IMG/VR virus record: IMGVR_UViG_3300042289_000986
Coordinates: 1 to 64,000 of that record
Strand: one strand, 5' to 3'
DNA: 64,000 bases
Shown here piece after piece: positions 41,077 to 56,361 of this stretch. How positions within the stretch are numbered: position 1 is the stretch's first letter; every line of letters begins with the position of its first letter. Below the pieces are notes generated by a model, which was given only the letters and a program-made list of their open reading frames with translations, had not been told where the DNA came from and did not search any database. The translations under genes were made by a program, and so were the position numbers.

Positions 41077-41216
41077 GTTTTTACCATGTGGGCCTTGTGG
41101 TCCCTGTGGTCCGGTTAACCCCTTACAAGAAAACATGAATCTTATTTTCTTGTTGAATGCACCCACGGGCAAAAAAAGTTCTTGCCACGGGCGCGGGAAT
41201 TTGTCATGCTCTCCCC

Positions 41217-41387
41217 ATGTTCAAAAGAACCTACACCTACCATTACATCGAGGCTGACAAAAACCATCCTCATCAATTTGAAAAAAAATTTAAAAAAATC
41301 CTTGACACTTTGCTGAATCCTGATTATGTTCGCGCTGTTGAAAAGATTGCAAAGATTTATTCCAAGCAAAATTATCTTTACAACTAA
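41217..41387 (+). CDS. Small hypothetical protein
   Basis: MFKRTYTY ORF behind a cassette promoter. Confidence 0.45.
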   Translation: MFKRTYTYHYIEADKNHPHQFEKKFKKILDTLLNPDYVRAVEKIAKIYSKQNYLYN

Positions 41388-41414
41388 CCACCAACCAACT
41401 AACCTAAAACCACA

Positions 41415-43430
41415 ATGAAACTAAGCACCACCACCAACACCATCGAACGTATCGGAAACGTGTCCAACGAGGCGCAATTCCGTATGAAAACAAGTCAGAA
41501 GGCATTTCAAATCCTCTCTGACCTCTACTCCGACAAACCTCTCGCCATCGTGCGTGAGTTGGGTTGCAACGCCGCTGACAGTATGACTGCTGCTGGCAAA
41601 GCCGACCAACCCTTCCACATTCATCTTCCGAACACCTTGGAACCTTGGCTTGCCATTGAAGATTTCGGGACGGGTATCTCGCATGATGACATCTACGAGA
41701 TTTACACTGTCTATTTTGCTTCGACCAAGACCAACAGCAACAGTCAGATCGGTTGCTTGGGATTGGGTAGCAAGTCTCCTTTCTGCTATACCGATAACTT
41801 CTCCGTGACTTCTACTCACAATGGAGTTCGTCGTATCTACAATGCTTACTTCAACGAGGAAGGCACTCCTGCAATCGCACTCATGTCAACCGAGAATCAT
41901 TCTGGTTCCAATGGTGTGAAGATTCAAATTCCTGTGAAGTCCACAGACTTCCAAGACTTCCTTGTTGCTACGCAAAAAGCCTTCCGCTTCTTCGACGTTA
42001 AGCCAACGATCAGTGGCGGCAAGTTGGATTGGGGCGTGGAAACTCCGTTGTTCAAATCGGACGATTGGGCTTTCTTTGAGAAGATGGCAGACCGCTATCA
42101 TGGTCAATCCTTCGCCATCATGGGTGGCGTGACCTATCCTATCGACACCTATCAAGTGCGCGATGAAGAAGGCGAGTATCAGCAAATGCTTCGCAACGGA
42201 TTGGTCTTGAAGTTCGCTATGGGTGAGTTGGACTTCACTCCTGCAAGGGATGCTCTGTCCTATACGCCTATGACAATCAAGGCAGTTCATGACAAACTTG
42301 CCAAGGTCAAGAAAGAGTTGCCTGTCAAGGTGACTGAAATGATCGACAGCAAAGAGACGTTGCTTGAAGCTATCCGCGCCACGTTGTTCTTCATCGACAA
42401 GTTCTACTTCCTCAACGTCAATCGTATCGGCGTGAAGAAAGATGAAATGAAGATCACTTGGAAAGGTATCGACATTACCGAACCTACTGGCTTTTTCAAA
42501 AAGCTCGCGCCTGACATGGAGTTGTTCAGCAAACGTAGTTGGCATCGTCGCAAGATCAGTGTCAGCACTCAACCACAATTCGGTAGCGACATCGAATGGT
42601 TCCGTAATGACGTTGTTCGTGGTGGCGAGCGTCGAGTTCGTGGATACGTTTCTTCCAGTGGCAAGACTGTCATGGTTTTCAATCAGACCGATTATGACAA
42701 TCTTCTCAAAAACAAGTTCACATCCGATATGTTCAAAGCGGTATCTTCGTTGCCTTCTCCTACTGCTCAACGCAAAGTGCGTAGCAATGGAACAGTTGTG
42801 CAAAAAGCCAAGGAAGATATTACTACCTATACCTTCGGGGAAATGCACAAAGAGAAGTGGGAGAGTGAAGTGATCGAACCTTCCGACACTCTGCCTAAAT
42901 ACTACTTTGTCAAAGAGACTGATGGTTGGGGATTGAAGCTCAAGCTCAACGGCATCCGAGTTCTTTCTACCAAGGGAGAGTTGGCAAACATCCTCGCCGC
43001 TTTCGGTATCTCGCGTGATGAAGTCTGCATGGTTTCGTCGCGTGAGGAAAAGAAAGTTCTCCAACGTGGAGGATGCGAGAATCTTGCAACGTGGTGGAAC
43101 GCTAACATCAAAGTCGAGTTCGATGCCGATGAGTTGAAAACTCTTGAAGAATACGAGTTCTATCACATGGACAAGATCACAAGTCATAAGAAGTTCAAAG
43201 ACCTTGACGATTCCAATTCCATCAAAGTCGCGCTCAACACGCTCAAGACTTTGAAAGCAAAGTATGTCAAACTCAAAGACATCACTCATTCCTTGGAAAA
43301 CTTCAAGAGTGGAAAGAAAGTCAAGTTCCCTCTTAATGAAGCGGAAGCGATTGTGTTTGACTTCATCCGTAATTGCGGTCACTACGATTGCGACAAGTAT
43401 CTGGTGCTTGCCAAGGCACTTGAAAAATAA
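41415..43430 (+). CDS. rIIA: RIIA-like protein (N-terminal GHKL ATPase)
   Basis: LYSDKPLAIVRELGCNAADS, DFGTG and GCLGLGSKSPFCYTD motifs; followed by rIIB. Confidence 0.9.
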   Translation: MKLSTTTNTIERIGNVSNEAQFRMKTSQKAFQILSDLYSDKPLAIVRELGCNAADSMTAAGKADQPFHIHLPNTLEPWLAIEDFGTGISHDDIYEIYTVYFASTKTNSNSQIGCLGLGSKSPFCYTDNFSVTSTHNGVRRIYNAYFNEEGTPAIALMSTENHSGSNGVKIQIPVKSTDFQDFLVATQKAFRFFDVKPTISGGKLDWGVETPLFKSDDWAFFEKMADRYHGQSFAIMGGVTYPIDTYQVRDEEGEYQQMLRNGLVLKFAMGELDFTPARDALSYTPMTIKAVHDKLAKVKKELPVKVTEMIDSKETLLEAIRATLFFIDKFYFLNVNRIGVKKDEMKITWKGIDITEPTGFFKKLAPDMELFSKRSWHRRKISVSTQPQFGSDIEWFRNDVVRGGERRVRGYVSSSGKTVMVFNQTDYDNLLKNKFTSDMFKAVSSLPSPTAQRKVRSNGTVVQKAKEDITTYTFGEMHKEKWESEVIEPSDTLPKYYFVKETDGWGLKLKLNGIRVLSTKGELANILAAFGISRDEVCMVSSREEKKVLQRGGCENLATWWNANIKVEFDADELKTLEEYEFYHMDKITSHKKFKDLDDSNSIKVALNTLKTLKAKYVKLKDITHSLENFKSGKKVKFPLNEAEAIVFDFIRNCGHYDCDKYLVLAKALEK

Positions 43431-43482
43431 TTGAAAAATTCCATTGACAAATAACAACAAACCATATAACCTAATAAACGAT

Positions 43483-44469
43483 ATGAATAAGCATACCACA
43501 GCAGTTACTATCACAGGCAACGGCAAGATCGCCGCTGTCATCGACGGCACGGCATACTCCGTGGAAACCGATCACCCGAACCATGCCAAGGCACTTGACG
43601 CTATTCGCAATAGCGATTGGGAAACCTTCTTGGATTGTGTTGACCTCTCTCGCAAGGTTCGTGACTACGTTCACAACACCAACGTCGAGATTAAGGATGG
43701 CATGATCGTGTTCGATGGTGAATCTGTTCACAACACCTTGACCAAACGAGTCATTAGCTTCATGCAACAAGACTTGCCTTTCAAGCCTATGCTCAACTTC
43801 CTCTGCAATCTCATGGACAATCCTTCCAAGAGAGCGGTTGACGAGTTGTATGACTTCCTTGAAGCAGGTGAGTTGCCCATCACTGAAGATGGTCACTTCC
43901 TCGCCTTCAAGAATGTCAAAGCAGACTACAAGGACATTTACTCTGGCAAGTTTGACAATGCGGTTGGTGCTATCTGTGAAATGAAGCGCAACCAAGTTGA
44001 CGAGGACAAAGATCGCACTTGCAGTTACGGATTGCACTTCTGCTCTATTGCGTATCTCCCTCACTTCCGAGATTGTAATGGTGGTAAGACCATGATCGTG
44101 AAGATCAATCCCAAGGACGTTGTTGCTATTCCCGCCGATTACAACAACACCAAAGGACGCACTTGCCGCTACGAAGTTGTTGGTGAATACACCGAAAACT
44201 GGCGCGAGAAGTTGGGTCGCAACGAAAGCGGTTGGGACGCTCCACTCTACTCATCCGATGGTGGGGAGTATGAGGACGAGGATTCCGATTGGAATGATTG
44301 CTGCGATGATGGCAATTGCTACTGCAACGAAGATGATCAATCCTATGATGATCACTTGGATGAAGTCAGCAACGGATACTCTCCCGATGTTTATGGAGTC
44401 AAACCCACTGGTCAAAAGTTCTACAACCTCCGTGGGGATGATGGGAAGTTCCAAAAGAAGAATGTGTAG
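43483..44469 (+). CDS. rIIB: RIIB-like protein
   Basis: ITEDGHFLAFK, RTCSYGLHFC and VKINPKDVVAIPADYNNTKGRTCRYEVV motifs. Confidence 0.9.
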   Translation: MNKHTTAVTITGNGKIAAVIDGTAYSVETDHPNHAKALDAIRNSDWETFLDCVDLSRKVRDYVHNTNVEIKDGMIVFDGESVHNTLTKRVISFMQQDLPFKPMLNFLCNLMDNPSKRAVDELYDFLEAGELPITEDGHFLAFKNVKADYKDIYSGKFDNAVGAICEMKRNQVDEDKDRTCSYGLHFCSIAYLPHFRDCNGGKTMIVKINPKDVVAIPADYNNTKGRTCRYEVVGEYTENWREKLGRNESGWDAPLYSSDGGEYEDEDSDWNDCCDDGNCYCNEDDQSYDDHLDEVSNGYSPDVYGVKPTGQKFYNLRGDDGKFQKKNV

Positions 44470-44579
44470 GGTTAGTGTTATTGCATTGTGGTGTGGTTGC
44501 TGAAAGGCAAAGGGGGAGGGAAGTCTGGGCTTCTCTCCCCCAACACCATGAATCATATTTTCTTGTTAAGTATTTTCAT

Positions 44580-44652
44580 GCGTCTGTAGCTCAGTGGATA
44601 GAGCAACTGCCTTCTAAGCAGTGGGTCGCAGGTTCGATCCCTGCCAGACGCG
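44580..44652 (+). tRNA. tRNA-Arg (TCT)
   Basis: Canonical cloverleaf; ACTGC-CTTCTAA-GCAGT. Confidence 0.95.
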
Positions 44653-55658: not shown

Positions 55659-55855
55659 TGAGAGCCACCGAATTCAGATGCAAGGGTCACCATTTCCGTG
55701 TGGAAGAATCCTTCTGTGGTGATACCCCAAACAATAACGTCTGGGTATTGAACAGAGCAAAGACCAACTGGGATTGGAAGCTGCTCACCAACTACGACTA
55801 CGATCATCTTGTTCGTAGACTCAAACGAGTAGGCATCGACTACTTCAAAGACTGA
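55658..55855 (+). CDS. Hypothetical protein
   Basis: TAATG overlap. Confidence 0.55.
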   Translation: MRATEFRCKGHHFRVEESFCGDTPNNNVWVLNRAKTNWDWKLLTNYDYDHLVRRLKRVGIDYFKD

Positions 55856-55876
55856 TCATCTTCAACCTCCGATCAC

Positions 55877-55908
55877 AACCCACTGCTGGCAACGGCAGTG
55901 GGTTTTTT
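55877..55908 (+). terminator. Rho-independent terminator
   Basis: CCCACTGCTG-GCAA-CGGCAGTGGG plus T-tract. Confidence 0.85.
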
Positions 55909-56111
55909 CTTTCCCACATCTGTCCAGCCCGTCACCTGCGCTCACAAGAAAATATGATTCATCTCTTCTTGTTGTCCCAGTTGAACAGTGGTTCTAACCC
56001 ACCCACCAGTTCTTATGACAACCAAAGGTTCCCATCAGTAGAACAATCTATTCTTTATGACACTCGCGGCGGTTGTCCACCAACCACTCATCATCTATCA
56101 TTGATACTGTT

Positions 56112-56312
56112 ATGAAATCATCACACAGCAAACGAGTCGGTAACCTCATCAACAAAGCACTCCTCTCTGGACTCTTCTGGAACAAGGAGACAACCATCGG
56201 AGGTATACTCTACCCTCACGATAAGACCATGCCACCCTTGGCTTGGCACCGTTCAGATAGAGGCTTCCATCCTACGAGGAGATACCTAAAGAAGTTTGGG
56301 ATCACCCCATAG
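56112..56312 (+). CDS. Hypothetical protein
   Basis: GTTATG start, followed by a terminator. Confidence 0.5.
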   Translation: MKSSHSKRVGNLINKALLSGLFWNKETTIGGILYPHDKTMPPLAWHRSDRGFHPTRRYLKKFGITP

Positions 56313-56331
56313 ACTTCCACCTCGAAGTCAG

Positions 56332-56361
56332 ACCCACTGCTCGCAAGGGCAGTGGGTTTTT
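56332..56361 (+). terminator. Rho-independent terminator
   Basis: Near-copy of the 55877 terminator. Confidence 0.85.

Follow-up and report, generated by a model that had tools for sequence, protein, structure and literature searches.

Mobile regulatory cassettes called promoter-early stem-loops (PeSLs) have been described in the T4-type phages RB49/phi1, T4/PST and KVP40/nt-1. They consist of a stem-loop and an early-promoter motif repeated in hyperplastic regions, close relatives differ by insertions, deletions and replacements at the motifs, and excised mini-circles carrying one chimeric motif are known (PMC2839356, PMC4122927). Here we describe an 18-kb island of small genes separated by copies of a composite module in the IMG/VR virus record IMGVR_UViG_3300042289_000986. 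The window (the whole stretch of DNA that was analysed) comprises the first 64,000 nucleotides of this 211,587-bp record, which has a terminal overlap of 143 bp and contains no Ns. The genome is referred to as W. The explanation that in our judgement is probably correct as a whole is that the island is an early hyperplastic block in which the modules serve as portable crossover points, and that a palindrome contained in the modules has a regulatory function. The original prediction, made from the letters of the sequence, had seen in the same region a copied regulatory scaffold between which cargo genes are exchanged; this was essentially a rediscovery of PeSL-type shuffling.

The island resembles the PeSL regions in that it lies in a T4-type phage genome, in that the modules are repeated between small ORFan genes of a hyperplastic region, and in that close relatives differ by insertion, deletion or replacement of single open reading frames (ORFs), with crossovers inside the motif. 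The components are also alike: a stem-loop terminator, an AT-rich stretch and sigma-70-like -35 and -10 boxes, represented here by A6-7, a TTGnCn-like box, 16-17 nt and TAnnnT, all called from geometry. Whereas PeSLs have a Shine-Dalgarno box and a start codon at their 3' end, the island modules have no Shine-Dalgarno box, and the ATG follows 9-10 nt past the -10 box. Thus four of the defining features of PeSLs were found in the island and the Shine-Dalgarno component was not. The island modules further differ by a strictly conserved 29-bp palindrome/17-mer, placed at a fixed distance between terminator and promoter, by additional stand-alone half-sites, and by the confinement of all copies to a single island whose GC content at third codon positions (GC3) exceeds that of the backbone about threefold. 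An operator-like palindrome with lineage-specific co-varying arms, a leaderless layout and a compositional island were not found described.

The host-takeover module of SPO1 and the immediate-early region of T4 are densely packed with very small early genes that have strong host-type promoters and terminators, and rII-type genes lie near or inside them. The island is likewise a dense run of very small genes, each with a promoter and a terminator. We know of no repeated operator-like palindrome or compositional island in the SPO1 and T4 regions.

Judged from its genes, this uncultured freshwater phage is a T4-like jumbo myovirus. Among its products are a gp43-type DNA polymerase, gp46- and gp47-like nuclease subunits, a replicative helicase, a ribonucleotide reductase, a tail sheath protein, a large terminase and rIIA/rIIB; a gene for a gp55-like late sigma factor, the sole phage sigma factor found, adjoins the gp47-like gene. 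The island sequence is present almost word for word in at least 24 lake-water metagenome runs. When the island DNA was compared with 50,697 GenBank phages, tRNA matches were obtained and no close relative was found. The GC content of the whole genome is about 31%, and one block at ~39.5-56.4 kb has 40-52%. The modules extend beyond 41125, the left edge of the region first proposed, to approximately 38.5 kb. The island and its rII genes are (window coordinates throughout):

38509..56380, + strand: early-type (as judged from its layout) hyperplastic island with ~45 small + strand genes, rIIA/rIIB, 5 tRNA calls, every 17-mer copy, and raised GC (40-52%) and GC3
41415..43430, + strand: rIIA homologue, 671 amino acids
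43483..44469, + strand: rIIB homologue, 328 amino acids

The most conserved element of the island is the 17-mer GAAWCWTATTTTCTTGT, which was missing from the list of repeats in the original prediction, although it is the core of the palindromes noted there. The genome contains 21 copies, all within 38,693-55,960 and all but one on the + strand. Its 11-nt core TATTTTCTTGT occurs 22 times in the window, as compared to an expectation of 0.2. In class A copies (12 forward and one inverted, at 55944) the 17-mer constitutes the right half of a 29-bp imperfect palindrome, ACAAGAAAnnATGAATCWTATTTTCTTGT. Class B copies are lone 17-mers of the form GAAACWTATTTTCTTGT, found at 38745, 39992, 46812, 49518, 49569, 52350 and 52828. 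Within the window the right arm of the palindrome is invariant and the left arm decays; hairpin energies lie between -8.7 and -1.4 kcal/mol. An Rfam search of 37-57 kb gave no family matching the palindrome. The copies that matter for the argument are listed below (lineage 2 and contig C are relatives of W, introduced later).

38681..38709, + strand: class A palindrome, first copy; a class B copy follows 52 nt later
40059..40087, + strand: class A palindrome, then a 17-nt spacer, A6 and a putative TTGACC-17-TATTAA promoter
41125..41153, + strand: class A palindrome upstream of a small gene and rIIA; spacer family CCCACGGGC
44550..44566, + strand: half-site-only 17-mer, 13 nt 5' of tRNA-Arg(TCT)
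44819..44847, + strand: class A palindrome, 3' of a tRNA-Arg/Lys pair
46812: class B half-site with an ATG 2 nt downstream
49891..49919, + strand: class A palindrome, spacer family GTGTTCGAGATTCAGG, ahead of a non-coding stretch and tRNA-Cys
51077..51105, + strand: class A palindrome, spacer family GTGTTCGAGATTCAGG; gene 51172-51813 (Pfam GP88 family)
51911..51939, + strand: class A palindrome, spacer family GTGTTCGAGGTTCAGG; gene 52006-52278
52924..52952, + strand: class A palindrome, spacer CCCACGGG; gene 53065-53607
53709..53737, + strand: class A palindrome; gene 53803-54174; downstream cassette replaced in contig C
54274..54302, + strand: class A palindrome; gene 54369-54776; crossover site, with an extra lineage-2 cassette between two palindrome copies
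54872..54900, + strand: class A palindrome; gene 54965-55255; replaced in contig C, beginning at the final 17-mer base and ending at the stop codon
55341..55369, + strand: class A palindrome; TTGACC-16-TATACT-10-ATG; genes 55434-55658 and 55652-55855
55944..55972, - strand: the only inverted class A copy, with a perfect 17-mer and without the usual promoter spacing

In run X16 a minor contig variant covering the inverted palindrome module (window 55925-56039) carries 13 substitutions and 2 indels, which represents strain-level variation.

The composite module begins with a GNRA-loop terminator, which is followed by the 29-bp palindrome, a spacer, an A-tract, a -35-like box, TAnnnT and a GTTATG start. 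Strong intrinsic terminators are enriched (36 found, 15.9 +/- 4 expected); the family is exemplified by

54197..54224, + strand: GNRA-loop intrinsic terminator, with family members at 39919, 41044, 44733, 49814, 51002-51029, 51834, 52719, 53625, 54794, 55274, 55877 and 56330

Downstream of class A palindromes the register is a spacer of 16-18 nt, A6-7, about 3 nt, the -35-like hexamer, 16-17 nt, TAnnnT, 9-10 nt and ATG. The hexamer varies from TTGACC through to CTTCCC, and the stretch before the ATG ends in a conserved GTT. The distance from the A-tract to the -10 box (25-27 nt) and from the -10 box to the ATG (9-10 nt) is common to W, lineage 2, contig C and the more distant relative G001. 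Since these distances are kept in lineage 2, contig C and G001 despite differing spacer sequences, the geometry appears to be constrained. The A6-7 tract presumably corresponds to a proximal UP element, whose consensus AAAAAARNR it fits. A transcription start 7-8 nt past the -10 box would leave a 5' untranslated region of 2-4 nt, and the mRNAs would be effectively leaderless. The 9-10 nt between the -10 box and the start codon leave no room for a Shine-Dalgarno sequence, and genome-wide Shine-Dalgarno-like 4-mers precede 19 of the 192 genes, below the 27 in the within-gene control. A Bacteroidota host was considered because of the lack of Shine-Dalgarno sites and the 31% GC; the island promoters are TTGACA/TAnnnT-like and not of the TAnnTTTG type.

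The individual repeats on which the original prediction was based are all present at the positions given there, far in excess of chance. The motif recurring after the palindromes, GTGTTCGAGRTTCAGGAAAAAA, starts at 49921, 51107 and 51941 (three matches, none expected in 100 shuffles); the copy at 54901 is TGTTTCGAGATTCAGGAAAAAA, that is GTGTTCGAGRTTCAGGAAAAAA minus 1 nt, and is overlooked by an ungapped search. CCC(A)ACGGG(C)AAAAAA is present at 41162, 52961 and 54311, TTCGAGCATCAAAAGAA at 49881 and 54862, and GCAACCCAGAAC at 51065 and 55329. The terminators at 54197 and 55274 are near copies (85% identity over 40 nt), as are those at 55877 and 56332. The proposed module families were also borne out: the modules are homologous copies in which recombination around the palindrome joins left and right halves independently of each other, and the suggested alignment of the flanks showed them to be mosaic. 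For example, the spacer GTGTTCGAGRTTCAGG follows six different left flanks, and the left flank CACCTGCAACCCAGAAC precedes two spacer families, as in free combination of flanks. The genes between the modules are unrelated, as had been noted: an all-versus-all BLASTP of 41 island proteins gave zero pairs at E<=0.01, and none of the 41 has a homologue elsewhere in the genome.

Relatives were recovered with the 17-mer and rIIB as queries against IMG/VR and JGI metagenome contigs. They include an identical 49-kb contig, four records of 93-99% identity (lineage 2) and a contig (D) covering the left boundary of the island. Contig C shows 87-93% identity to the window inside the island and only ~80% in the flank. 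More distant are G001 (195 kb, 70-85% identical), L135, and L137, with 61% amino acid identity in rIIB. A cassette order kept unchanged among related phages would have spoken against shuffling; it was found that relatives of 88-99% identity differ by whole cassettes.

Lineage 2 has one additional complete unit of 568 bp, consisting of spacer, promoter, a gene for 135 amino acids, terminator and palindrome, between two palindrome copies at W 54274-54307. Two cassettes of W (54833-55900) are absent from lineage 2, with the junction in a 16-nt terminator tail:

54818..54833, + strand, repeated at 55900-55915: terminator tail GGGTTTTTTCTTTCCC, junction at which W and lineage 2 differ by two cassettes (1,067 bp)

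This deletion junction occurs in three separately recorded contigs (L056, L019 and L122). Lineage 2 also lacks W 49585-49903 and has one 17-mer in place of the two of the window. Downstream of the 53709 module, contig C carries two genes instead of the W cassette, and one of these is an orthologue (77% amino acid identity) of the extra gene of lineage 2. In the same contig the segment that starts with the final base of the 17-mer (54900) and extends to the stop codon (~55244) is swapped for an unrelated promoter and gene, and 55914-56332 is missing by a terminator-to-terminator deletion whose junction lies inside the near-identical terminators. Six events altogether begin and end in a palindrome/17-mer, a promoter or a terminator tail. 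For the genes that were inserted or brought in as replacements the W genome offers no homologue, and they therefore cannot be assembly artefacts. Gene-by-gene identity between the lineages is patchy (72-100%). This patchiness, the mosaic flanks and the closer similarity of contig C inside the island fit exchange between lineages.

Module copies share identical stretches of 16-31 nt, and the cassette junctions between relatives fall in such stretches, indicating that the modules act as portable crossover points. Nearly every small gene would be a transcription unit of its own, bounded by one composite module with a terminator, a palindrome centred ~76 nt 5' of the putative start site, a UP-element-like A-tract, sigma-70-type -35 and -10 boxes and a start codon. 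Crossovers at modules would insert, delete or replace single promoter-plus-gene units, as with PeSL cassettes. Since gp46/47 are present, the general recombination machinery of the phage itself is the most likely mechanism. The junctions located in terminators are better accounted for by general homologous recombination on short repeats than by a site-specific system. Of the duplication and shuffling originally proposed, the copying of modules and the exchange of cassettes therefore stand. The accordion part does not, as there were no duplicated cargo genes among the 41 island proteins compared by BLASTP, and neither does dedicated gene capture, as no recombinase was found among the proteins scanned and junctions occur in terminators as well.

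Information on the role of the palindrome came from the sister lineages. G001 and L135 retain the whole architecture, including the left flank CTCACCTGCAAC and the ATTCAGG-AAAAAAA spacer, but their palindrome is TTTAGAAGATTnCATGAATCnTGTAATCTTCTAAA. Both arms are changed in a compensatory manner: positions 7 and 8, counted from the A in the centre, are altered from A-T to T-A, and position 13 from C-G to G-C. The lone half-sites are changed alike (GAAACTTGCAATCTTCTAAA in G001, GAAACTTATTTTCTTGT in the window), and the variant motif of G001 is likewise confined to the island. In L137 a third 17-mer, ATTGTATTGTATTACAC, is found in the same positions. The invariant right arm, the decaying left arm, the variable hairpin and the half-sites tracking the lineage argue that the 17-mer sequence is recognised and not the hairpin. 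A hairpin or cruciform as the functional form was ranked low for the same reasons. Taken together, these comparisons suggest that dyad symmetry is favoured and that recognition specificity differs between sister phages. We infer that the palindrome/17-mer is primarily regulatory, a putative site of a phage-encoded, lineage-specific DNA-binding factor which may co-regulate the whole early block, either as an activator or as a shut-off repressor. The conserved right half would be the recognition unit and the left arm an optional second half-site; the factor would bind the half-site, or as a dimer the palindrome, ~60-90 nt upstream of the early promoters.

The operators of the C1 repressor of phage P1 are asymmetric 17-bp sites that occur singly or paired as incomplete palindromes. 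The island, too, has a 17-bp asymmetric unit at many promoters, in some cases as an imperfect palindrome of two such units. The C1 operators belong to a temperate phage and overlap promoters, whereas the island sites, in a T4-like phage, lie ~60-90 nt upstream of the predicted start, and no repressor was identified for them.

An unlikely but serious alternative is that the 17-mer itself is a promoter, used either by host RNA polymerase together with a specificity factor specified by the phage or by a phage polymerase that escaped detection. Class A modules would then be tandem promoters and class B copies stand-alone promoters. With its asymmetry, its length of 17-20 bp and its lineage specificity the element resembles promoters of single-subunit phage polymerases, and 20 of the 21 copies are oriented with the genes. 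Lone copies are found immediately before an ATG (46812, 2 nt), before a tRNA (44550, 13 nt) and before the gene at 52350, the differing 17-mer of L137 directly abuts an ATG, and the TATTTT of W fits TAnnnT. However, this -10-like hexamer is not conserved in G001 (TGTAAT, TGCAAT, TTCCAT), and the co-varying opposite arm would be left unexplained. A search of the genome for a T7-type RNA polymerase gave no match, although it was a weak search in which the control genomes gave no match either. Neither MotA (PF09158) nor AsiA (PF09010) was matched in the genome at E<=1, the gp55-like protein is the sole phage sigma factor found, and unlike a Mot box at -30 the island 17-mer is located 60-90 nt 5' of the start or abuts the gene. 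Large ORFs without annotation, examined in the search for a phage polymerase or specificity factor, look structural and have VWA, lectin and PKD domains.

That the palindrome is instead a dedicated recombination site, integron attC-like or the target of a nuclease, within a cassette-capture system, appears very improbable. The island does resemble an integron in being an array of unrelated single-gene cassettes that are parted by imperfect palindromes of consistent asymmetry and vary in content between relatives; several junctions lie exactly at the palindrome, and there is an HNH endonuclease gene at the island edge. But integrons have an adjacent tyrosine-recombinase integrase and promoterless cassettes ending in attC, whereas the island cassettes come with a promoter and a terminator each, and with the palindrome on the 5' side of the gene. 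Other junctions are in terminator tails, contig C has the modules without the HNH gene, and the half-site-only copies and the fixed distance to the promoter point to regulation. PHROGs and Pfam searches with ~30 island and flank proteins, which covered the small ORFs in part, detected no integrase or other recombinase.

It is scarcely credible that the repeats are merely shared regulatory signals, and the cassette differences products of illegitimate recombination or mis-assembly at repeats in which the modules have no role: assemblers do break at module repeats (the contigs of four lake runs end at repeats of 29-31 nt) and some differences have no module at their ends, but the 16-nt junction homology is below assembler k-mer length, the same junctions recur in at least three separately recorded contigs, the inserted and replacing segments bring in new coding sequence that the W genome nowhere contains, and the W order at 53.7-56.4 kb is spanned by single contigs in independent runs, as is the right island boundary. 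Apparent joints among lake-run contigs, considered as recombinants, proved to be cross-matches between paralogous modules.

Several observations weigh against the explanation that we prefer, an early block with portable, palindrome-regulated modules. A generic sigma-70 consensus scan showed no enrichment in the region (34 found, 32.6 expected), thus the promoter call rests on conserved geometry and not on consensus strength; promoters, start sites and early timing are all features that we infer from the sequence. No DNA-binding protein was recognized among the island proteins scanned, for which Pfam and PHROGs were nearly silent. The differences at W 47732-47806, 50055-50188 and 50310-50567 have no module at their ends. 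Moreover, gene-sized indels survive only with intergenic ends, so breakpoints in modules are partly expected. A search for RNA runs listed none. Finally, the runs holding the island were seen as assembled Logan contigs, and the evidence for crossovers consists of contigs, not reads.

The compositional contrast of the island spans window 39650-56320. GC3 is 0.42-0.69 in most island genes (0.57 in rIIA, 0.58 in rIIB) as compared to 0.14-0.23 in backbone genes, or roughly 0.5 against roughly 0.17 overall, and the flanks on either side of the island are intermediate (0.28-0.38). All relatives, G001 and L137 among them, show the GC contrast, indicating that it is due neither to a chimeric assembly nor to a recent unameliorated import. 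That the GC jump stems from a chimeric assembly was rejected also because both boundaries are spanned by several independent contigs. ARAGORN found 20 tRNAs genome-wide, nearly all with U34 anticodons reading A-ending codons. Five of the calls lie inside the island; the positions noted for the genome-wide set are:

36105, 44580, 44658, 48296, 49736 and 50192 of the window, and 69-84 kb of G000: tRNA calls (ARAGORN)

Rfam recognized four tRNAs only at 37-57 kb and did not confirm the tRNA-Arg(CCG) called by ARAGORN at 49736-49808. Possibly the early genes are written in host-like codons, independent of the phage tRNAs; GC-biased conversion in a recombination hot-spot is also possible. Rather doubtful, though worth stating, is the joint proposal that the island is a self-contained immediate-early regulon combining a specificity-switched factor and operator, host-like codons with leaderless mRNAs, and an open cassette platform. 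If this were true, the W-, G001- and L137-type 17-mers would be operator specificity switches between sister lineages, and the island genes could be expressed before the phage's own 20 tRNAs are available. If the platform is open, high recombination could alternatively raise the island GC, via GC-biased conversion.

The cargo proteins gave few clues. Among the 20 scanned, 17 were without a PHROG family, and the PHROGs and Pfam searches with the ~30 island and flank proteins were nearly all blank, with matches only to GP88, DUF1281_C and the HNH endonuclease. The cassette of contig C that replaces window 54965-55255 encodes an 89-amino acid protein (L060 1798-2067) whose N-terminus (..TLCIRLSAKDKARLKSIS..) looks ribbon-helix-helix-like by eye; possibly this cargo is a small DNA-binding protein.

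A second island-specific motif, CAACAnnGTGT-N7-CAACATGGTGT, has four copies in the genome (37976-38008, 39404-39429, 48957-48987 and 52263-52293). It is conserved in G001 and, as AGAACAYNGTGT, in L137, and at two sites it is followed by ACCYTCAAAACG and a TATAAT-like box. It forms tandem units spaced by 18 nt, as at:

48957..49010, + strand: second island-specific motif

About 600 nt at 49590-50190, ahead of tRNA-Cys, contain no convincing ORF but have module-type promoters and terminators (49690-49730 and 49814-49839). This stretch, partly absent or altered in lineage 2, may encode small RNAs; the non-coding sequence at 49.6-50.2 kb matched no Rfam family.

At the right edge of the island, outside the module system, lies

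57053..57826, - strand: HNH/NUMOD4 homing-endonuclease gene

The region of this gene is occupied by 2.5 kb of different sequence in contig C, and lineage 2 has an extra segment of ~790 bp at 56531-56604. To the left, ORFs 36283-36684 and 36700-37125 are tandem, Thr-rich, and share similar basic, Trp-rich C-termini (..PRWRL.PV...W.WR..). ORF 36700-37125 is a local hypervariable gene, showing 66% identity to the copies in lineage 2 and contig D, which are otherwise 96-98% identical. Window 1577-4744 encodes a 1,055-amino acid protein with multiple RCC1-type repeats that matches tail-protein PHROGs, and the ORFs 9025-12546 and 16410-21851 (- strand), with lectin-like and VWA domains, probably encode virion or adhesion proteins.

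With these results PeSL-type shuffling of cassettes, known from coliphages and vibriophages in culture, is extended to a jumbo phage that is abundant in fresh water and uncultured, and in which natural population variants show gain, loss and replacement of single cassettes with junctions defined at the base level. The palindrome with its co-varying arms and lineage-specific half-sites offers a handle on the co-regulation, and perhaps the shut-off, of early genes in T4-like phages without MotA/AsiA. The three-fold GC3 contrast, kept in diverged relatives, provides an unusually clean case in which expression timing, dependence on phage tRNAs or recombination may be considered as drivers of codon usage within a single phage genome.

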